Of a DNA stretch of 64,000 nt, positions 14,841 to 62,183 are shown piece after piece. Position 1 is the stretch's first letter; each line of letters starts with the position of its first letter. The notes below the pieces were generated by a model. That model was not told the origin of the DNA. It saw only the letters and a program-made list of their open reading frames with translations, and did not search any database. The DNA lies in NCBI GenBank assembly GCA_020184695.1, contig JAANOX010000238.1:62001-126000 (forward strand), in the 5' to 3' direction. Position numbers and translations under genes: made by a program. Source of the DNA: Histomonas meleagridis 2922-C6/04-290x (lineage: Eukaryota > Protista > Parabasalia).

Positions 14841-15337
14841 ATGGTTTTATATGCATTGTTTGGAATTTATTTGAATAATTTCTGATTTATTTGAATAATT
14901 TAAAACTTATTTGCGTTATTTGATATCAAAATTTATTTTAATAATTTCGAATTTATATGTTTTATTTGTTCTTTATTATAATAATTTCTGATTTCTTTTG
15001 ATAATTTGAAATTAATTTTAATTGTTTCTAATTTATTTGTTTTATTTGATATTTTGTATTTATTTTGATAATTCGATATTTTAAAATAATATTTGGAAAT
15101 TCTTTAAATTATTTGAAACAGCACTTATTTTAGCATCTGAAAAAGGTAATACAGAAATAATTAAATTACTTCTTGAACAAGAAGGAATTGATATTAATGC
15201 TAAAGATATTTATTTGTTTATTTGATATTTATTTTAATAATTTAATATTTCAAAATAATATTTGGAAATCATTTAAATTATATGAAACAGCACTTATTAG
15301 AGCATCTTATTTTGGTTATAATGGAAGAAGACGTTAA
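14841..15337 (+). other. Orphan ankyrin fragment preceded by a long array of single triplets separated by 17-nt spacers
   Basis: 13 spacers in 14844-15114, then a TALILASEKGNTEIIKLLLEQEGIDINAKD module, then a second 4-spacer array (16/17/17/17 nt). Confidence 0.75.
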
Positions 15338-25749: not shown

Positions 25750-26025
25750 TGATCTTATCTTCAGAATCAAAAAAATGTTGAACTTGTAAAATATATCTTA
25801 GAACAAAAAGAATGTAATGTTAATGCTGAAGATATTTGACTATTTTATTTAAAATTTATTTGTATAATATAAAATTTCAAATTTATATTTGGAAATTATT
25901 TGAATTATTATTTTCCATCACTTTATATAGCATCCATAAGCGGCGATGCAGAAATACTTAAGTTACTTCGTGAACAAGAAGGAATTGATGGTCATAATGA
26001 AAACATTCGCCTAATTTTAAATTGA
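25750..26025 (+). pseudogene. Ankyrin fragment with one 4-spacer array
   Basis: VELVKYILEQKECNVNAED-[17]-AAA-[17]-AAA-[17]-GGA-[18]-TTT-PSLYIASISGDAEILKLL; upstream frame disrupted. Confidence 0.75.
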
Positions 26026-37369: not shown

Positions 37370-38500
37370 TTTCAACAACAACTTTCTGGAGACGTTCCGT
37401 TTGTTGCGGTTCATTTTTCATGAAGAAGAGCGATCCGAAAATAACATATGGGGTCAATCCGTGCACGATTGATTCCTTTTACTTTGAAGTAAATATTTTA
37501 TTTTCATTTGATTATTTTCAGATGCTATTGTAAGCGCTGTTTTGATATTAAAATATCAAATTTTTAAAACGAATAGAAAATAAAATAAATTAATATCTTT
37601 AGCATTGATATCGATTCCTTCTTGTTCAAGAAGCAAATTGACAATTTCTATGTGACCATTTATAGATGCTTCCATAAGTGCTGTTTTAAATAATTTGAAT
37701 GAATTCATCAAATTTTTTAATAAAATATTAAATAAAGCAAAAAAAAAATTTTTAGAATTAATATCAATTGTTTTTTGTTCTAAAATATATTTAACAAGTT
37801 CAATATTGTTTGAGTTCACAGAATCAAACAAAATATCTTTTGGAATTTGATTATTTTGAAGGAAATATATTTAACATGATATAAGTTCCCAATTTTAGCA
37901 GCTATATTAATTAAATCCTGATAAATTTCCATTAGATCTAAAAATAAGAAAATCTCGTAACCTCCATTTGTAATACACAAAGATCCCAAACTATTAATAT
38001 CTTTTTGTTGTGTTTCAGATGAAAAAGTATTAACATCCCAACGAATATAAAGTTTATAATCAATTCCATAGAAATTTTCTATTTTGTTTTCATAAATATA
38101 TTTAAAAATATTATTTTGATGAAATTTAATTTCTATTCCGTTTGCATATTCAAATGTTGGATAGTTTTGCTCACATGAATAAATGAATGATTTCTATATT
38201 TCCACCTGCAACAGCATAATTACCTGTTTTGCTTACTTTTATTAATAAATATTTAAAACATTTAACAAAATATGCTGCATAATCAATTAATGGAACTTCA
38301 CCATTATTAATAAAATCACATCTTTCATAAAGTGATGGTTTAATTGTTTGATTAAATTTAAAATTTGTTTGTGATGATATAAAAAAATATTTATTAAAAG
38401 GTTTGTGTGCTTAATAATATGTTATTTTTTTAAATCATTTGTTTTTTCTTGAGCTTTAATTTCTTTTTTTTTTTTTCCTTGCTTCCTGTTCCATCGCGCT
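37370..38500 (-). pseudogene. Decayed DUF3447-type ankyrin gene with damaged spacer arrays
   Basis: YAAYFVKCFKY/YAVAGG remnants in broken frames; two ankyrin junctions with partly deleted spacer arrays. Confidence 0.7.
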
Positions 38501-50344: not shown

Positions 50345-51391
50345 ATGGATAAGGATGATTCAGACTTTTTCCGAGAGAAATTTGAAGAAGGAAAAGTCAT
50401 AAATCAATTCACAATTGTTAACCATATTGGCTCAGGAGGATATGGTGATATATATATGGTAAAAAGAGAAAATAATGTTTATGCAATGAAAATCGAATAT
50501 TTAGATGCAGAAAAGCAAGGCCTACATCAGGAGATCAAAATCTTAAACGATTTACAAGGGTCTCCTTATTTTCCAGTTTTTATTACAGATGGTTATTATG
50601 AAAATTTTCGCTATTACGTCATGGAACTTTTTGGTCCTTCCTTATCTCAAGCCCGTAGGGCAGCACCCAGCAGGAAATTCTCACTTAGCACAACACTGAA
50701 GTTATCAAATGAAATGCTTAATTGTATTGAAGAATTCCATAAACATGGCTATATCCATAGGGACATCAAGCCAGGAAATTTTCTTATACGACCTAATCGG
50801 GCTTTTCCTATCGGCCTTATTGATTTCGGACTATCTCAATCATATTGGATATCACCACACAACCACAAGCATATCAAATCGAACCCACAGGCAGGATTTA
50901 CCGGAACCTGTGGATACGCATCATTAAATGCTCATAACGGGAAACAACTTTCAAGACGCGATGATCTTTTTTCATGGTTTTTCTCTGTAATCGAACTTTC
51001 CGAGGGCCACGTCCCATGGCCAGGCAGCAAAGACGTAGAACTCACCATTAAACTTAAGAAGAAAAGTACACCACAAGAATTATGCCGATCACTCCCACCT
51101 CAATTTATCGAAATATACAAATATTTAAAAAGACTCGAGTTTAAAGAGGAGCCAAACTATCAATTCATCAGACAAATGATACAAAAAGCTATCAAAGAAC
51201 AGGATTATGATGACCCAAAATTCGATTGGGAATATTTCCCACCAGAAAAAATAGCAGAAATTTCATCAATTAGCTTAAAAATGAGTGGAGAAAAAGGTTC
51301 TAATCCATTAGATGACGATATCCTTAATGAACAGAATAATGAGCAAGAAATCGCTGGTGGTGGATGCACAGGTGGTTGCAATATTTATTAA
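50345..51391 (+). CDS. Casein kinase 1 family kinase
   Basis: IGSGGYG, MELFGPSL, HRDIKPGNF, LIDFGLS, GTCGYAS and SRRDDL motifs. Confidence 0.93.
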   Translation: MDKDDSDFFREKFEEGKVINQFTIVNHIGSGGYGDIYMVKRENNVYAMKIEYLDAEKQGLHQEIKILNDLQGSPYFPVFITDGYYENFRYYVMELFGPSLSQARRAAPSRKFSLSTTLKLSNEMLNCIEEFHKHGYIHRDIKPGNFLIRPNRAFPIGLIDFGLSQSYWISPHNHKHIKSNPQAGFTGTCGYASLNAHNGKQLSRRDDLFSWFFSVIELSEGHVPWPGSKDVELTIKLKKKSTPQELCRSLPPQFIEIYKYLKRLEFKEEPNYQFIRQMIQKAIKEQDYDDPKFDWEYFPPEKIAEISSISLKMSGEKGSNPLDDDILNEQNNEQEIAGGGCTGGCNIY

Positions 51392-51803: not shown

Positions 51804-54803
51804 ATGCAAAACAATCTTCTCCAATTATATTTAGAATTAATTGATCCATCTCAATGTGAAAAAATTTCACTAATTTCACAAAGAATTATGGAATGTTACC
51901 AAAATCCAGAAAGTGTAATTCAGGTATTAAGTATATTAAAAGATGAATCAATTCCATTTGTTATAAGAGAGCACGCAGCACTAGCGTTGAGACAAGTAAT
52001 TAAAAATCATTGTGATATATTATTATCTGGTCAGTTAGGTATTTCATTATCAGATCTTGTTCAAATTTTAGCCCAAGAAAACAATACGTCAATAGCCAAT
52101 CATATTGTATTTTCATTAACTCCAATATTTGAGAGAACAGGTGAATCATGGGTTGAATTATTACAATTAATTTCGAATTTATTGTCAATTGATAATATCC
52201 AAAAAAGAATCATTGTTCTAAACTTGCTGGTTAACTTTCTTCCTTACACATCTCCACAGTATACAATTCAATCTCTTCAATCAGGTCTTGCCATGATAAT
52301 CATGCAATCACTTCAATCTAATAATCCTGAACTTGTTGTCCTTGGTTTTGGTCTTTTTTCTTCTCTTCAACAATCAGGCATTCCATCTGATCAATATTCC
52401 AAAGAATTTTCCGAGATTTACAAGATGATGATGCATCTTTATCTCTGTTTCTTACAATCAAATGACGCAAATGTTGCCAAAGCCACACAATATATGCAAT
52501 CTTCCATCCCATCAGAAGGACTTTTTGAATCACCTCAGAATATATTTAACGGTTTCATTGAAATCATTCAATCACCTAACATAGAAAATCATCTTCGAAC
52601 TCTTCCATTATTTCCAATTAAGCGTCTAATCAAACATTATGGCTCACAAGTTGAAGCATCATTTGGTGTAGCAATACCTATTTTCCTTCAAATTTCATCT
52701 GTATTATTCCAAGGCAATGGATATGAAAATGAAGAAGATTCACATTTTATATATTTCATATTTGATAAAATTGCGAAATCAACAAATGCCACAAATCTTA
52801 TAAAATTTTTATTGGAACTTTCTAATTCATCACCAGAACCACCACAATCATTTGCTGTATTATCAGCATTTCATGGAATTATTGGAATATGTGTTGAAGA
52901 AGTTGATTTTTATTTTGATGAAATTATGGCAATGATATTAACCAAAATTTCATTAAATAATATATCAATTATTGAGTTATCTTTTCATATATTACGATCA
53001 TTAGTTAAATATCATTCCAAATTATTTGTTAATTATGCCGAAAAAGTCATTGGAATTATATTACAATTTTGTAATAGTCAAAAAGAAGAACTTTCATATA
53101 CATCATTAGATTTATTAACATTAATATTATGTAAAGTTGAAGATGTATCAACTATAATACCCATTACAGATTTACTTGTTCAACTTATTAATTTTTATCA
53201 AGTTTCAAGAATAACATTAAAACATCAAATTATGTATGCAATTTCAGGTATCATAATATCATGTAAAGAAGATAGTAAACAATATGCAGGAATGATCTTA
53301 AATATTATATGGGAAGGTTGTCAATTAAATAATGAAGAAAATAACGAAGCTCGTTATGCATGTATTGAAGCGTTATGTAACTTATTAATATTTGCTACTG
53401 AAGAATGTAAAAATATTTATGATGCATCAATTCAATTATTCTTTTCATTATCGAATAATGATAATAATGATTTACAATTAAGAGATATATCATTAAAATC
53501 TATTATTAGTTTATTAAGATTTAAAGATGAATTTAATCAACAATTTTATGAATCTGCAATGAATAATGCTATTAATGCAATCCATACTCCTTTTGATGAG
53601 GATTCTGATCTTTATACTGAAATTGATTTAAATCATGATTTAATCATCGATGGATTTCAAATCATTTATGAAATTATAAAGAAATTAAAACAAGCAATTG
53701 AACCTATGTGTAATCAATTAATAATTATTTTCCAGAAATTTAATGAATTTAATTCATATGAAATATTTACTTATTTCATACGTACATCAACAAAATTTTA
53801 TTCGATTTTCCCTCAAATTGATACAAATATAATTGATCAACTTCAAAATATTATAATGGAAAGTAAAGAAGAAAAAAGAGTTCGAATAAGTTTCAAATGT
53901 TATAATAAATTATTTAATTCGAATCATCCAAAAGCATTAGAAAAATGTAATGAATTTTTAGAATTATGTTTTCAAGGTCTTTTACGTAAATTACGATTTC
54001 AAATCAATTATAAATATAATTATAAAACAATGCAATCAATTCATGATATAATCTGTTCAATGTTTAAGTTTAACATTGTACAATTTCCTTCAAATACATT
54101 TTTCCAAATATTTATGAATATTTTGCCGAATATTAATGACACAGAAATATATCAATTCTTTTCAACGTTTGCATTATATGTAAATGTTGGTGGAGAAATC
54201 GATAAAATATTTATCCAATTATGTGTATCTAAACTTCAAACAATGAATTTCTCATTATTACCTGAACCAATATATTTCTTTCGTGTATTAATCCGTGAAA
54301 GACTTCAATCAGTCATCGAATATATACCATTTTATTTACAAGAATTTTGTCCAAAAATTTTAAGCGTTGAACCTAATGGTAAATATTATTGGGAAACTAT
54401 TACTAATGTTTGTTCTTCTTTACTCGATTTATATATAAATTCTCCAAATTTAGTATCATTACCACAAATTCTTCAATTTATTTCTGATAAATTACCAGTG
54501 AAAGGTGATTATAGTGAAGGAGATTTTATATATAAAACATTGTTGGTAATAATTCAGAAACATCCAAAAGAAATTATTCAAGTAATACCTCAGTTAGTTG
54601 TCGGATTCATTAAAACTTTAGCGTTGGAAGAAGTGAAATTTAAAAAATATAAATTCCCAAATGATACTTTAATGAATATGATAGCGTTTGTTAGAACAGT
54701 TTTAAATAATTTACCACAAATGCAACAACAAATACCATTAATATTAAATAATGATGAAATTAGAATGAAAAGATTCTTAGAAAGATACCAAATGTTTCAA
54801 TAA
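51804..54803 (+). CDS. Karyopherin-beta/importin-like HEAT-repeat protein
   Basis: 999 aa helical ORF with an IBN_N-like N-terminus (IREHAALALRQVIKNH). Confidence 0.7.
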   Translation: MQNNLLQLYLELIDPSQCEKISLISQRIMECYQNPESVIQVLSILKDESIPFVIREHAALALRQVIKNHCDILLSGQLGISLSDLVQILAQENNTSIANHIVFSLTPIFERTGESWVELLQLISNLLSIDNIQKRIIVLNLLVNFLPYTSPQYTIQSLQSGLAMIIMQSLQSNNPELVVLGFGLFSSLQQSGIPSDQYSKEFSEIYKMMMHLYLCFLQSNDANVAKATQYMQSSIPSEGLFESPQNIFNGFIEIIQSPNIENHLRTLPLFPIKRLIKHYGSQVEASFGVAIPIFLQISSVLFQGNGYENEEDSHFIYFIFDKIAKSTNATNLIKFLLELSNSSPEPPQSFAVLSAFHGIIGICVEEVDFYFDEIMAMILTKISLNNISIIELSFHILRSLVKYHSKLFVNYAEKVIGIILQFCNSQKEELSYTSLDLLTLILCKVEDVSTIIPITDLLVQLINFYQVSRITLKHQIMYAISGIIISCKEDSKQYAGMILNIIWEGCQLNNEENNEARYACIEALCNLLIFATEECKNIYDASIQLFFSLSNNDNNDLQLRDISLKSIISLLRFKDEFNQQFYESAMNNAINAIHTPFDEDSDLYTEIDLNHDLIIDGFQIIYEIIKKLKQAIEPMCNQLIIIFQKFNEFNSYEIFTYFIRTSTKFYSIFPQIDTNIIDQLQNIIMESKEEKRVRISFKCYNKLFNSNHPKALEKCNEFLELCFQGLLRKLRFQINYKYNYKTMQSIHDIICSMFKFNIVQFPSNTFFQIFMNILPNINDTEIYQFFSTFALYVNVGGEIDKIFIQLCVSKLQTMNFSLLPEPIYFFRVLIRERLQSVIEYIPFYLQEFCPKILSVEPNGKYYWETITNVCSSLLDLYINSPNLVSLPQILQFISDKLPVKGDYSEGDFIYKTLLVIIQKHPKEIIQVIPQLVVGFIKTLALEEVKFKKYKFPNDTLMNMIAFVRTVLNNLPQMQQQIPLILNNDEIRMKRFLERYQMFQ

Positions 54804-55446: not shown

Positions 55447-57659
55447 ATGAGGCCAAAGGAACATTGCAACTGGGAAACACTTCTATCTATAAATCAAGCA
55501 ATTTTTGGTTTGAATGAAGAAAGTTTCCCTAGAACTTTAGGTTTGATAATCAACAAATTTGATGAAATCCATCCTTTATCTTATGATTTAATTATTATTC
55601 AAATGATATATTATTCCTTTGTAATTAAAATCAATAAAAAGGATTTATTTTTGAATATTATAAAAGAAATAAGAGCATTTGAAGAGAGTAATAAAATCAA
55701 ATCCAATATATTTGATGTATTTGGTCGATTTCTTATCAATAAGTATACAAATGAATCATCTTATCTTCTTGAAGCTATGATTGAACATAATTTTCTTGAA
55801 CCAAATATTGTAAAAAACGACCAGAGTGCTTATTTTGCACATTATATGTCTAAAGATAAATTAGCAATCCGTTTAAGGGAATATGATTTTGTAAGTGCCT
55901 TACCGAATTATGATGAACTTTCAAAGAATGATTGGGAACTTCATAAGAAATTAATTCGAGAAGGACATAATCCAAATGAAATTTCGAAAATAATACGAAA
56001 TGATGAAATAGAAAAACTTCAAGAAATATCATCACGATGTAATTTTAGTTATAATCAAAAAATTGATAAATCTATTTATGAAAAATGTTCTTTTATAAAT
56101 ACGAAATATGTTACACCCATTAATTATGCAGCATTCTTTGGATCTGTTAAATGTTTTAAATATTTGCTTATAAATGGTGCAAAATTAATAGACACAGGTA
56201 AATATGCAGTTGCAGGCGGAAATGAAGAAATCATTCATTTATGTGAACAAAATCATTCATCTTTTAATAATGCTTATGAAGCAGCAATTGAATTTCATCG
56301 AAATGATATCTTTAAATATTTTTATGATAATAAGTTAAAAGAAATTCATAATTTAGAAGAATTAGGAAAGCTTTGTATTTTATATCATAATTATGAAATA
56401 TTTTCATATTTACTTAAAGAAGGAATGAAGATCAATGATGATATTATTAATGAAGCAGCAAATATTGGAAATATTTTTTTTGTTAAATATTTCCTTAAAG
56501 ATCATTCAATTCCCCATGATATATTGGTGTTTTCAGCCGGATCAGGAAATATTGAACTTGTTGAATACGTATTAAAACAAAAAGGAATTAAAATTAATGC
56601 TAAAGATATTTATTTGTTTTATTTAATATTTATTTTAATAATTTAGAATTTCAAAATAATATTTGGAAATTATTTAAAATATTTAGAACAACACTTATGA
56701 TTGCATCTTGTAAAGGTTACACAGAAATAGTTAAATTACTTCTTGAACAAGAAGGAATTGAAATTAATGCTAAAGATATTTATTTGTTTTATTTAATATT
56801 TATTTTAATAATTTAATATTTCAAAATAATATTTGGAAATTATTTAAATTATTTAATACAGCACTTATGTTTGCATCTTCAAATGGTCATACAGAAATAG
56901 TTAAATTGCTTCTTGAACAAGAAGGAATTGATATTAATGCTAAAGATATTTATTTGTTTTATTTTGTATTTGTTTTAATAATTTTATGTTTCAAAATAAT
57001 ATTTGGAAATTATTTGAAATATTTAGAACAGTACTTATGTTTGCATCTTCAAATGGACATACAGAAATAGTTAAATTACTTCTTGAACAAGAAGGAATTG
57101 ATATTAATGATAAAGATATTTATTTGTTTTGTTTAAAATTTATATTAATAATTTGGAAATTCAAAATAATATTTGGAAATCATTTAAATTATTTATTACA
57201 GTACTTATGTGGGCATCTTGGAATGGTCATACAGAAATAGTTAAAATACTTCTTGAACAAGAAGGAATTGATATTAATGCTGAAGATATTTATTTGTTTT
57301 ATTTAATATCAATTTTTCAAAATAATATTTGGAAATTATTTAAATTATTTAATACAGCACTTATGTTTGCAGCTGAAAATGGTCATACAGAAATAGTTAA
57401 ATTACTTCTTGAACAAGAAGGAATTGAAATTAATGCTAAAGATATTTATTTGTTTTATTTAATATTTATTTTAATAATTTAGAATTTCAAAATAATATTT
57501 GGAAATTATTTAAAATATTTAAAACAGCACTTATGATAGCATCTGATGAAGGTAATACAGAAATAGTTAAATTACTTCTTGAACAAGAAGGAATTGATAT
57601 TAATGCTGAAGATATTTATTCGTTTTATTTAATATTTATTCGTTAAAAATTTAATTTAA
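55447..57659 (+). CDS. DUF3447-type ankyrin-repeat protein with spacer arrays (3' end possibly truncated)
   Basis: 387 contiguous codons, then arrays at 56608, 56778, 56948, 57118, 57288 and 57444 reading NRGR, NNGN, CYGR, KGGI, N(IN)GN and NRGK, plus a partial array at 57614. Confidence 0.78.
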
Positions 57660-58112
57660 CAATTCGATCCAGTTTGAACTGAAAGGGTCGGTTGAAAGGG
57701 GCCTGTTCACCAAAAACGGAGCATTTGTTTTATTTAAAATTTATTCTTTTAGATCAATTACACAACCGCAAACCAATTCCAATTTGAATATTCAAATTTA
57801 TTACAAAGTTGGAGGTGTATGGAAAAATAAAGGTGTAGACACGAAATTTCAAATAAAAATATCTTGATAAAAATCAGGATTAAAAACATATTACGAAACA
57901 TACTGTTGTTATTAATTATAGATGGAAAAATAATTATATTGTTAAAATCACATAATTTAGTTAATATTTTCTCTTTATAATAAATAATTATTATTTAGAT
58001 ATATTAATTATGAAAATTCCAATTAAATGAAAAAAATCCATAAAATTTCCAAAAAATTGTTGGTTTTATTTTTTAATAGTTTACATGTTTATTCACTTTT
58101 TGTATGTTTTCC

Positions 58113-61100
58113 TTATCTTATTTTTTTGACATTTGTATCAATCCCATTTTGTGCAAGAAGGAGATCAACTATATCACCAAAAGATTTTTCATATGCAATA
58201 GCGAGTGATGACATAAATATTATTAATAATTTCCAAATATTATTTCGAGATATTAAATTATTAAGACAAAATTTAAATATAACAAATATATATTTTTAGC
58301 ATTAATATCAAGTCCTTTTTGTTCAAGAAGTAATTTAACGATATTTCTATTACCTTTTTTAGTTGCTTTAATAAGTGATGTATCAAATACTTTCAATAAT
58401 TTCCATATATTATTTTTGAAATATCATATTAACAAAATAAATATTAATTAAAACAATCAAATATTTTTAGCATTAATATCAATTCCTTTTTGTTCAAGAA
58501 GTAATTTAACTATTTCTGTATTACCTTCATCAGATGCAATCATAAGTGCTGTTTTAAATATTTTAAATAATTTCCATATATTCATTTGAAATAGGAAATT
58601 ATTAAAACAAATATTAAATATGGTAAGTAAACATCTTTGGCATTTATATCAATTTCTTCATGTTTAAGAAGTAAATTAACTATTATTATATTTTCTTTTA
58701 TAACAGCACAAATAAGTGCTGTAAAAAATAATATAAAAAAATTCCAAATATTATTTTGATATAAAAAATTATTGTAATAAATTTTAAATAAAACAAACAA
58801 ATGCTTTTAGCATTAACATCAATTTCTTTTTGTTCAAGAAGTAATTTAACTATTTCTATATGCTCATTTAAAGTTGCAAACATTAATGCTGTTTGGAATG
58901 CTTCAAATAATTTCCAAATCTTGTTTTGAAATATAAAATCATAAAAACAAATCCTAAATAGAAAAAGTAAAAATATTCTTTAGCATTGATATCAATTCCT
59001 TCTTGCTCAAGAAGTAATTTGATAACTTCTTTATAACCTTTTTCAGATCCATACATAAGTGCAGTTTGAAATATAATAAATAATTTCCAAAAATTGTTTT
59101 AAGTTATTAAATTGTTAAAATAAATATTAAATACAATATAGAAATATTCGCAGAATTAATATCAATTCCTTCTTGTTCAAGAAGAAATTTAACTATTTCT
59201 GAATGCTCATTTAAAGAAGCAAGCATAAGTACTGTTTGAAATATAATAAATAATTTCCAAATATTATTTTGAAATAAAAAATTATTAAAATAAATATTAA
59301 ATATAACAAACAAATATCTTTATCATTAATATCAATTTCGTTTTGCTCAAGAATTAATTTGACTATTTCTATATGACCATTTGAAGATGCAAGCATAAGT
59401 GCTGTTTGAATCAATTTAAATAATTCCCAAATATTATTTTGAAATTAAAAATTATTAAAACAAATTTTATATAAAATAAACACATGCTTTTAGCATTAAT
59501 ATCAATTCCTTCTTGTTCAATAAGTATTTTAACGATATCAATATTACCATTTTCAGATGCATACATAAGTGCTGTCGTAAATATTTTAAATAATTTCCAA
59601 ATATTATTTTGATATTTTAAATTTTTTATATAAATCAGAAATTAATTAAAAAATTTTTTTCTTTTAAATTGACATCAATTCTTTTTTGTTCGAGAAGTAA
59701 TTTAACTATTTCATTTTTACCATCTTTAGATGCAAATATAAGTGCTGTTCTAAGTAATTAAAATAATTTCCAAATATTAGATTGAAATATCAAATTATTA
59801 ATATAAATATCAAATAAAATAAATAAATGTCTTTAGCATTAACATCAATTCCTCTTTTTTTAAGAAGTAATTTAGCGATTTCCATGTTGCCATTTCCAGA
59901 TGCATACATAAGTGCTGTTGAAAATGATTTAAATAAATTCCGAATAATATATTGATACCAAAAGTTATTAAACCAAATATTAAATAAAATAATTAAATAT
60001 CATCAACATTTACATTAATTCCTTTTTGTTCTAGTATTAATTTAACCATTTCTACATGTTCTTTAACAGTTTCAATTATAAGTGCAGGTTGAAATAATAT
60101 AAATAATTTCCAAACATTAAATTAAAACAAAAAATAAATCAAAAAAATCTTGTTTTTAAGATTGATATTAATTACTTTTCTTTCTAAAATAAATTTCTCA
60201 AGCTCATCATTTCCTGATTCTATAGCATGAAACAAAATTTTATCAGGAAATTCATTAAAATATTTAATAAGATATAAATTTCCAAGCGATGCAATTTCAT
60301 AAATCATCTTTTCATTGCTTTTCATTCTTTTTTCAATTAAATATGATAAAATTTCATAATTATGATACAAAATACAAAAATGTCCTAAAATATTTAAATA
60401 TTTTTGTCCCTTTTTTTTACCAGAAGTTGAACATAAATTTATATTATTAAAACTATTGAAATTAATTGATGAGTTACCAGTAATTGGAAAATTATTTTCT
60501 TCTAATGTTTTAACTTTTTCGGAATTATTTTCATAAAGATATTTAAAGATATCATTTTGATGAAATTCAATTGCTGCTTCGTATGTGCCTTCAAATGAAG
60601 AATGATTTTGTTCACATAAATGAACGATTTCAATATTTCCGCCTGCAACAGCATATTTACCTGTGTTAAAAACATTTGCACCATTTATAATTAAATATTT
60701 AAAACATTTGACTGCTGAAAAAAATGCTGCATAATCAATTATTGTAACATTTTCATGATTAATAAATGAACATTTTTCATAAAGAGATAATTGAATTATT
60801 TGATTAAAATCAAAATTTGCTTGTGATGATATTTCTTGAAGTTTTTCGATTTCATCATTTCGAATTATTTTCGCAATTTCATTCGGATTACGTCCTTTTT
60901 TAATTAATTTCTTATGAAGTTCCCAATCATTTTGTTTAAGCTCTTCATGATTATTTATATAATGCATTATATTGATGAAATGAGGTTTATTTGTTTTAAT
61001 GATATTTTTAATTTCTTTTTCTTTTTGTCGATGAATAAAATAAAGTGGTTGAACATTTTCAACTAAATTTTCAACTATATTTTCATCAATTAAATTTTCT

Positions 61101-61471
61101 ACAATCATTTTCTCAATTAAATATAATGATTCTTGTGTGAGTGTTTTAGATATACAATTATAAAAAATGTTAAAAACTTTAGATTTATTTTTATAGATTT
61201 CTTCTTCTTTTGTTTGAATTTTTTCTAAATATTTAATATATAAATTATTTATTTCTTTGTGTGAAAAAAATGCATAATAAGCTAAATTACAAATAACTAA
61301 ATTACATGAATTAGGAAAATTAATATCAAATAACTTCATTGTTTGTTCAATTGATAATTCAAAATTTTCTTGAGATAAATTAAATATAATTTTTTGAAGC
61401 TCGCAAAGAGTTTCAAGATAATAATTTGATGATTTAGTATTATTGTTTTTCTTGCTTCTTTTTACAGGCAT
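58113..61471 (-). CDS. DUF3447-type ankyrin-repeat protein, 852 aa after removing 47 spacers (46 of 17 nt, 1 of 18 nt)
   Basis: 441 contiguous codons from the ATG at 61471, then 12 arrays. Ends GIDTNVKKIR-stop. 3359-800=2559 nt = 853 codons. Confidence 0.85.
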
Positions 61472-61541: not shown

Positions 61542-62183
61542 ATGAACTCCAATAAATGGAAGTTTCCATATCAAAAGAAAAAAAGAGAGCGTCAACAACC
61601 CAGCTCACGCGCCCACCTTGGGTTCCTTGAAAAAAAGAAAGATTATGTAATAAGAGCTAAATATCAACATGAAAAAGATAATTTTATTCATCAAATGAAA
61701 AGAGAGGCAGCACAAAGAAATCCTGATGAATTTTATTTTTCAATGATTACTGATTCGAAAAAGAAAAAATTAGAAACAAAATCAAAACCATTAAGTCACT
61801 TTAATAAAGAGCAACGTCTTTTACTAGAAACACGTGATCAAAACTATATTCAGATGAAACTGCAGATTCACCGTAAAAAACTTGAAGAGTTAAAACAAAT
61901 GATTCCTCCTCCAAAACCCAAACCAACTCGATTTTTTGCAACAATTGAAGAAGCTTTAGCCGCCAAAGAAAAGGAGGAACAAGAAGAAGCAGCAGAGGAA
62001 CCTACTCCTGAAATCAGAGAACTGAAAAAAGAAATTGCACAAAGAGAAAAAATTGTTAATCAGCTTCAAGAAGTATATGATGAAATGCAGTTACAAAAAG
62101 ACCTTAAAGATGGCGAACATACCACATATGAGGATGATGAGGGAAATGTTTCTTATCAATGGAAGAGAGAAAGAAAACACTAA
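61542..62183 (+). CDS. UTP11: U3 snoRNP/SSU processome protein Utp11
   Basis: RERQQP..R.HLGFLEKKKDY..RA and RNPDEFYFSM motifs. Confidence 0.9.
   Translation: MNSNKWKFPYQKKKRERQQPSSRAHLGFLEKKKDYVIRAKYQHEKDNFIHQMKREAAQRNPDEFYFSMITDSKKKKLETKSKPLSHFNKEQRLLLETRDQNYIQMKLQIHRKKLEELKQMIPPPKPKPTRFFATIEEALAAKEKEEQEEAAEEPTPEIRELKKEIAQREKIVNQLQEVYDEMQLQKDLKDGEHTTYEDDEGNVSYQWKRERKH

Follow-up and report, generated by a model that had tools for sequence, protein, structure and literature searches.

A stretch of 64,000 nucleotides (nt) from the genome of Histomonas meleagridis (assembly GCA_020184695.1, contig JAANOX010000238.1, positions 62,001 to 126,000 of the forward strand), referred to here as the window and numbered from its own first letter, contains on its minus strand an ankyrin gene whose 12 C-terminal repeats are each interrupted by an array of very short AT-rich spacers that have single codons between them. 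The window has a G+C content of 29.7%, its open reading frames (ORFs) are long and intron-poor, and its eukaryotic genes include those for Utp11, protein kinases, importin-beta and a WD40-bromodomain protein as well as several DUF3447+ankyrin genes. The kinase gene at 50345-51388 is letter-identical in two assemblies of H. meleagridis (contig WSYJ01000025.1 of GCA_020186115.1, and GCA_020184695.1), and in the gene table of WSYJ01000025.1 the three ankyrin loci at 46.4-61.5 kb of the window have no annotated gene. The 21 kb at 459154-480200 of that contig have just four genes on record, the three ankyrin genes and an ORF of 999 residues (window 51804-54803) being missing, and two annotated relatives are truncated at the point where the frame enters the first spacer. 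The genome paper describes ~11,000 genes with scarce introns, at most one per gene, and makes no mention of ankyrin genes or of such inserts (PMC8529796), while full-text literature searches found no description of an arrangement of 17-nt spacers and single codons. Because the ankyrin family escapes annotation, the published gene and intron count would be incomplete for a family that looks large and highly expressed.

Architecture of the Ankyrin Gene

The gene opens with a minus-strand ORF running from 61552 to 60122 (ATG at 61471) that encodes a DUF3447/ankyrin domain, and downstream of it lie 12 units of ~170 bp, each made up of a 90-nt open ankyrin module and an AT-rich stretch of ~80 nt that breaks the frame. 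With the end of each 30-codon module as its anchor, a mechanical comb divided the AT-rich stretches into alternating pieces of 17 nt and 3 nt. This removed 47 spacers with a total of 800 nt, 46 of 17 nt and, in array 11, one of 18 nt, and left a frame of 2640 nt with no internal stops (880 codons from TTG at 61552, or 853 codons, stop included, from ATG 61471 to TAA at 58115-58113).

Exon 1 (60149-61471, minus strand as are all features of the gene) ends with the codon AAG at 60149 and matches Pfam DUF3447, Ank_2, Ank_4 and Ank_3. Array 1 (60092-60148) consists of three 17-nt spacers and retains TTT (60131-60129) and GGA (60111-60109), and every later array has four spacers and three retained codons. 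These are AAT, TTG and GGA (N, L, G) in array 2 (59922-59998), GAT, GAT and GGA (D, D, G) in array 3 (59752-59828), CTG (A+TG with a one-base shift of the first spacer), AAA and GGA in array 4 (59579-59655), AAA, TTA and GGG (K, L, G) in array 5 (59409-59485), AAT, TTT and GGA (N, F, G) in array 6 (59239-59315), and AAT, AAT and GGA (N, N, G) in array 7 (59069-59145). They are followed by AGG, TAT and GGA (R, Y, G) in array 8 (58896-58972), AAA, TTT and GGA (K, F, G) in array 9 (58726-58802), AAT, CCT and GGA (N, P, G) in array 10 (58556-58632), AAT, GAT and GGA (N, D, G) in array 11 (58385-58462, with spacers of 17, 17, 18 and 17 nt), and AAA, AAT and GGA (K, N, G) in array 12 (58215-58291).

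The exon after each array starts with the codon that completes the loop and continues into one module. In order, these exons are Q + module 1 (PALIIETV...NVDD; 59999-60091), S + module 2 (59829-59921), R + module 3 with an extra K (59656-59751), T + module 4 (59486-59578), Q + module 5 (59316-59408), Q + module 6 (59146-59238), Q + module 7 with an extra Y (58973-59068), Q + module 8 (58803-58895), F + module 9 (58633-58725), K + module 10 (58463-58555) and D + module 11 (58292-58384, an open frame), each of 93 nt apart from the two with an extra residue, which have 96 nt. The last exon (58113-58214) is M + module 12 and ends with NVKKIR and the stop codon.

The original prediction, made from the letters alone, had proposed 47 spacers, 853 codons and a terminal NVKKIR-TAA at 58113, with modules free of stops and frameshifts, and had named a re-parse in silico as the check; the automatic re-parse was run, reproduced these figures and gave one open frame. 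It also returned the same 12 loop readings (FGQ, NLGS, DDGR, LKGT, KLGQ, NFGQ, NNGQ, RYGQ, KFGF, NPGK, NDGD and KNGM), and the further Gly synonym GGG that had been noted is indeed present in array 5 (59428-59426). The pattern also recurs in a paralog at 47840-46572, which is older and more diverged and parses with the same comb into eight arrays (DSGC, NKGF, NRGI, RGGW, ADGW, NRGW, NDGW and KNGN) with the Gly codons GGA, GGC and GGT. The interruptions affect the last position of the repeat and, after it, the first two of the Pfam Ank profile, among them the conserved Gly, and these positions coincide with the most variable, surface-exposed positions of the ankyrin repeat. The product would be a protein of 852 residues in which a DUF3447/ankyrin N-terminal domain precedes 12 ankyrin repeats that recur every 34 residues.

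Evidence for the Register of Spacers and Codons

The register of the comb is reflected in the variability of the arrays. In an alignment of 16 arrays, the mean column entropy was 1.39 bits in the retained triplets vs 0.44 bits in 69 spacer columns (Mann-Whitney p=3e-6), the variable columns being exactly the three columns of each retained triplet, and the third triplet is GGN in every array. These three-column islands of high entropy agree with the earlier judgment that the pattern is unlikely to be due to chance. That the isolated triplets are free of stops is weak evidence alone (p about 0.017 in shuffles), and several other registers are also stop-free.

Profile matches point to the same register. 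Nine of the ten single exons tested matched Pfam Ank (PF00023) at 25.5-36.7 bits, from profile positions 3/4 to 31/32 of 33, where the gathering cut-off is 21.1 bits. These are the exons with modules 2 (36 bits, profile positions 4-32), 3 (25.9 bits), 4 (34.4 bits), 5 (33.7 bits), 6 (29.6 bits), 7 (26.8 bits), 8 (29.8 bits), 9 (25.5 bits) and 10 (36.7 bits), and the match of module 1 is weak (17.9 bits). The Pfam check foreseen in the original prediction thereby holds at the level of single exons, on which it was run in place of the joined protein. The exon matches thus leave out the loop positions 33, 1 and 2, the Gly included, and these are provided by the arrays. The joined tail aligned with an uninterrupted ankyrin protein that has a 34-residue period (P0027) over 369 residues and 11 repeats with 2 gaps (148 bits), loop G over G, whereas a model with whole arrays removed reached 100 bits with 9 or more gap openings, about one per repeat.

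Anatomy of the Spacers

The spacers, whose A+T content is over 90%, share a consensus that begins with R-T-T-T and ends, after nine intervening bases, with A-T-T-T. Those of this gene start with A in 89% of cases and with G in 7%, are rich in T at positions 2-4, carry A at position 14 (-4) in 93%, and have T at positions 15-17. Those of the older paralog start with G in 53% and with A in 37% and always have T at position 2, while their interior varies freely, and A at position 14 falls to 53%; this adenosine is at most suggestive of a branch point. Among the ends of 79 spacers, AT (42), GT (19) and AA (12) predominate on the 5' side and TT (64), AT (9) and TC (4) on the 3' side, with no AG. 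The 79 spacers hence lack the borders of U2-type introns (5' GT/GC with 3' AG), although flanking exons are joined in frame in RNA, as in the removal of such introns, with 187 nt (11 x 17) gone and eight of eight boundaries in agreement. Signals of the U12 (AT-AC) type were not found in the spacers either: there is no 5' ATATCC, no branch sequence TCCTTAAC and no 3' AC, the starts being ATTT, AATT and GTTT and the ends TTT. RNAalifold predicted no conserved pairs in 16 arrays, where pairing made of AU only could be missed, and scans of the window with Rfam and for tRNAs gave no match. Extra constraint within the spacers was not found, identity being 77% in spacers vs 76% in modules and 73% at third codon positions.

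RNA and DNA Evidence

Four sequencing runs from 2023, labelled 'RNA?', contain about half of the words of the gene, and they were compared with two DNA runs from 2021. The share of array-region words is 0.72-0.82 in the DNA runs vs 0.24-0.38 in the RNA runs. RNA contig X4 record 27 (747 nt, 0 mismatches) aligns at letters 1-400 with 60548-60149 and at letters 611-707 with 59751-59655, which leaves 210 letters vs 397 in the genome, and the missing 187 nt equal 11 x 17, i.e., the 3+4+4 spacers of arrays 1-3. In X1 record 5 and X3 record 20, array 1 is represented by 6 letters instead of 57 nt. RNA pieces end at the predicted exon ends 60149, 60091, 59921, 59829, 59751 and 58214; in particular, exon 1 pieces stop exactly at 60149, a piece covering module 1 spans 59998-60091 with 0 mismatches, a contig starts exactly at 59921, and the contigs of the last exon (57586/57589-58214) start exactly at 58214. 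The spliced form is deeper than the unspliced form, precise, and identical across the four runs.

Unspliced contigs are informative as well. In a 31-mer graph, an unspliced side branch should start and end k-1 = 30 nt from the first and last base that differ from the spliced form, and the ends of the unspliced contigs (136-137 nt) over arrays 2 (59892-60027), 7 (59039-59174), 8 (58866-59002) and 12 (58185-58320) fit the 17/3 model in eight of eight cases. Removal of whole arrays accounts for two of the eight, and registers shifted by one or two bases for none to three. This fit indicates that the processed form also exists at arrays 2, 7, 8 and 12, and it pins down two letters, the one that opens the first retained codon and the one that closes the Gly codon. 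The spacers are thus present in the DNA and missing from much of the RNA in 17-nt units, with outer boundaries that fit the predicted bases. The letters retained in the RNA are probably the predicted triplets, judging from the 3-nt islands of variability, from the conservation of GGN and from how well the ankyrin profile is matched. Protein-database homology searches and exact look-ups found no product of these RNA runs.

Two other intron models were rejected. One ordinary intron per repeat would be without GT-AG, and removal of whole arrays yields repeats of 30-31 residues that are gapped in each repeat, besides the poor agreement with the contig ends. A model with a 51-nt and a 17-nt intron, which keeps the first two codons of the array and had been prompted by a paralog RNA contig reading D-I-Y-G-D-T-A-L, is excluded here, as the RNA pieces stop at 60149 and 59829, before the array.

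At 56600-57600 and 58400-58600, words of modules that paralogs also carry reach an RNA depth of 10^5-10^6, and many cross-matching RNA contigs read K/D + four codons + TAL; these contigs and the word depth suggest very high expression of the ankyrin family overall, in processed form. In addition, RNA contigs of all four runs at 57586-58214 (609-612 nt, 0 mismatches) have exactly 17 letters missing inside. They span the last exon, the intergenic region and the end of a convergent gene, and the candidate solitary spacers are 57899-57883 on the minus strand (GTTT...TTTT) and 57614-57630 on the plus strand. A scan of the window for solitary 17-nt spacers joining long ORFs found none outside ankyrin genes.

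Interpretation and Proposed Mechanism

We conclude, with a probability of roughly 85%, that this locus is a real, expressed and so far unannotated gene of H. meleagridis, in which loop codons are carried as 3-nt microexons between spacers of 17 nt (rarely 18) that are removed from the RNA. The leading guess for the machinery, which we put at about even odds, is that the spacers are excised by the spliceosome as aberrant minimal-length introns. The spliceosome is favored by the uniform minimal length, which is typical of tiny spliceosomal introns, by GT as the commonest start in old arrays and by the enrichment of an adenosine near the 3' end. Recognition would depend on the 5' RUUU, U-richness, the A at -4 and the fixed length instead of GU...AG, and neighbouring spacers would be removed one after another. 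The arrays probably spread via duplication of the 170-bp repeat unit, with the older paralog retaining only the spacer length and the end signals.

A number of points weigh against this interpretation. With respect to the spliceosomal step, there is no GT-AG, no AT-AC and no parabasalid branch motif, the 3' AG/AC is absent and +1 is often A; moreover, with 17-nt introns only 3 nt apart, spliceosomes could not assemble on neighbours at the same time, and removal is therefore forced to be sequential. With respect to the RNA, unspliced contigs are abundant, at ~0.4 to 1x the depth of the spliced ones, and could represent pre-mRNA, retained forms or DNA carry-over, and the runs, with their uncertain label, lack a silent-stretch control. 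The RNA contigs give the lengths and boundaries of the microexons and not their letters, and they are short-read assemblies rather than single molecules. Arrays 4-6 and 9-11 were read from the sequence, array 4 with the addition of an RNA piece end at 59655. This piece (59655-59751) is one base longer than the predicted exon, which ends at 59656, and suggests that array 4 begins with a spacer at 59654-59638, in which case L would be replaced by M.

The alternative that best survives is removal from the RNA by a non-spliceosomal process, in which an endonuclease and a ligase (in the style of tRNA splicing or of Ire1/RtcB) or another machine acting as a ruler makes its cuts ahead of RUUU and behind AUUU, a fixed 17 nt apart, and the ends are joined. 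This is a tentative proposal and we regard it as rather unlikely, even though it would suit spacers whose ends are never GT-AG, whose length is extremely uniform and whose exons are 3 nt long, and also the old arrays, where only ends and length are conserved. The known enzymes of this kind act on structure, whereas no conserved RNA structure is predicted, hence no bulge-helix-bulge or stem-loop, and exons that are single variable codons are unable to provide conserved pairing. In addition, GT is the commonest 5' end in the diverged arrays, as if these had come from ordinary introns, and a uniform minimal length is shared with tiny spliceosomal introns. In its boldest form, the proposal is that the spacers are substrates of an undescribed RNA excision-ligation system, which measures 17 nt between 5' RUUU and 3' AUUU and operates only on hypervariable loop codons in a single expanded ankyrin family; the 3-nt exons could then be included, skipped or exchanged independently, diversifying binding surfaces. 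This too is doubtful. Intervening sequences that are removed from RNA are a known kind of thing, and there is a substantial chance that the machinery excising these ones is new.

A decaying pseudogene, or a 170-bp satellite that arose from an ankyrin exon, is a very improbable reading of the locus; the spacer-free RNA would then come from an intact paralog elsewhere. In favor of it are the arrangement of the arrays as a 170-bp tandem repeat, the large size of the family and the many cross-matching RNA contigs of paralogs, but the spliced contigs have 0 mismatches to the locus over >400 nt of unique N-terminal sequence plus several modules, and the twelve diverged modules (76% pairwise identity) have neither a stop nor a frameshift. 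Variability is restricted to in-phase triplets, and no uninterrupted TAL-type repeat occurs in the window: its ~30 canonical TAL-type ankyrin modules, on both strands, are all preceded by an array, and contiguous G-x-TAL is found in none. The earlier view that spacers are removed to rebuild a full-length gene and that simple decay is unlikely is supported by the RNA contigs, which lack 11 x 17 nt over arrays 1-3, by the ends of the unspliced contigs and by the alignment of the joined tail with P0027.

An excision at the DNA level in some or all nuclei (cf. the internal eliminated sequences of ciliates), with RNA copied from the processed DNA, has an equally slim chance of being correct. The libraries contain both forms, and the DNA runs were not searched for the joined form, yet these runs contain 0.72-0.82 of the array-region words, the kinase gene ~7 kb away is identical in two assemblies with neighbouring genes similar, and 17 nt is far below the size of known eliminated sequences. 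We also know of no germline/soma split in parabasalids, and this counts against DNA excision.

Two further explanations hardly merit consideration. If the spacers were kept in the mRNA and skipped in translation by ribosomal bypass or serial frameshifts, which the frame-breaking nature of the inserts might suggest, RNA contigs would not be without spacers and deeper when spliced than when unspliced, and 47 bypass events per message would be unprecedented. An artefact, either an error of the genome assembly, which used nanopore reads (PMC8529796), or reverse-transcriptase template switching in AT-rich repeats, is suggested by DNA that is AT-rich and repetitive, but it is contradicted by arrays in Logan contigs of separate DNA runs, by a spliced form that is deeper, precise and the same in four runs, and by the same architecture in a metagenome contig from another project.

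Comparison With Known Systems

The shortest introns of Trichomonas are 23 nt long, with GT...AG and a branch motif, and introns of 15 nt in Stentor and 18 nt in Bigelowiella have been cited in the same work (PMC12316389). Such minimal spliceosomal introns (type B of Trichomonas vaginalis, 23-25 nt; Stentor coeruleus, 15-16 nt; nucleomorph of Bigelowiella natans, 18-21 nt) resemble the spacers in that they are removed from RNA, very short, nearly uniform in length, AT/U-rich and found in an intron-poor lineage. However, they retain GT...AG, and in Trichomonas also a branch/3' motif, whereas the spacers are RTTT...ATTT and never end in AG, stand in tandem 3 nt apart and are limited to ankyrin loops. 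Animal and plant microexons (3-27 nt) resemble the retained codons, as they can be as small as one codon, keep the frame and often encode surface loops, but they lie between long canonical introns and need enhancer proteins, while here up to three consecutive 3-nt exons lie between non-canonical 17-nt spacers.

The nonconventional introns of euglenids are likewise abundant and without GT-AG borders, but they are much longer, have variable borders and have their ends joined by stable secondary structure, in contrast to spacers without predicted structure; to our knowledge, the machinery that removes them has not been established. Endonuclease-ligase splicing (tRNA, the archaeal bulge-helix-bulge, or the 26 nt that Ire1 removes from HAC1/XBP1) shares with the spacers short excised pieces, a fixed distance between the cuts and independence of GT-AG, but it needs defined helices or stem-loops with conserved G/C, whereas the arrays are >90% A+T with no conserved pairing. 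Bypass elements, such as that of T4 gene 60 and the mitochondrial 'byps' of Magnusiomyces, of which there are many per genome, are also short, frame-breaking inserts in coding sequence, but they remain in the mRNA, whereas the spacers are absent from RNA contigs.

If the proposed structure is correct, the gene would have an extreme architecture, with up to four 17-nt intervening sequences in a row, one codon between each, and borders outside the known classes of splice site. Few known intervening sequences would be as short as the spacers, which would come near the 15 nt of Stentor and below the 23-nt minimum of Trichomonas (PMC12316389). The minimum length of introns and exons would become testable questions, as would the way in which cut sites are found without GT-AG in DNA of >90% A+T. 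That the interruptions fall at the most variable, surface-exposed positions of the repeat prompts tests of a link to diversification. On the practical side, a large-looking and highly expressed family of a poultry pathogen has been missed by annotation.

Related Loci and Minor Observations

At another locus of H. meleagridis (L001), the spacers start mostly with GTTT and one array has only two spacers; the protein annotated there as 'caskin' terminates by reading into the first spacer. The metagenome contig mentioned above (L002) shares the comb, and the commonest spacer of the present gene recurs there unchanged as the third spacer. In Tritrichomonas foetus MLAK01000993.1 (L003, 2990-3200), TRFO_08250 and the next gene resemble one ankyrin gene split by an AT-rich stretch of ~150-190 nt, which begins with GTTTTTT and includes TTTCTAG, and in this gap no 17/3 comb was seen by eye.

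In a small ankyrin gene of the window, ~13 spacer-like units of ~20 nt lie at 14843-15117 (plus strand) between an ATG and the first module. With a rigid 20-nt comb, only I/L/V-rich triplets are obtained there and the register is not clean, so that a peptide of one codon per 20 nt is not established. An ankyrin gene on the minus strand has at 37685-37750 a 63-nt loop insert that is in frame with both flanks, has no GGN codon and fits the 17/3 comb poorly. In another ankyrin gene, on the plus strand, a single clean array at 25834-25910 (AAA, AAA, GGA, then TTT TCC ATC ACT) reads D-KKGF-SITL. A G+C-richer island without an Rfam or tRNA match is situated between two convergent ankyrin genes at 57655-57720 (plus strand). 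The convergent paralog at 55447-57659 (plus strand) has six or seven arrays with the same four spacer types, and in its array at ~57270-57350 the second spacer is only 3 nt long (ATC), a 14-nt loss that keeps the frame and leaves a unit of 156 bp vs 170 bp.

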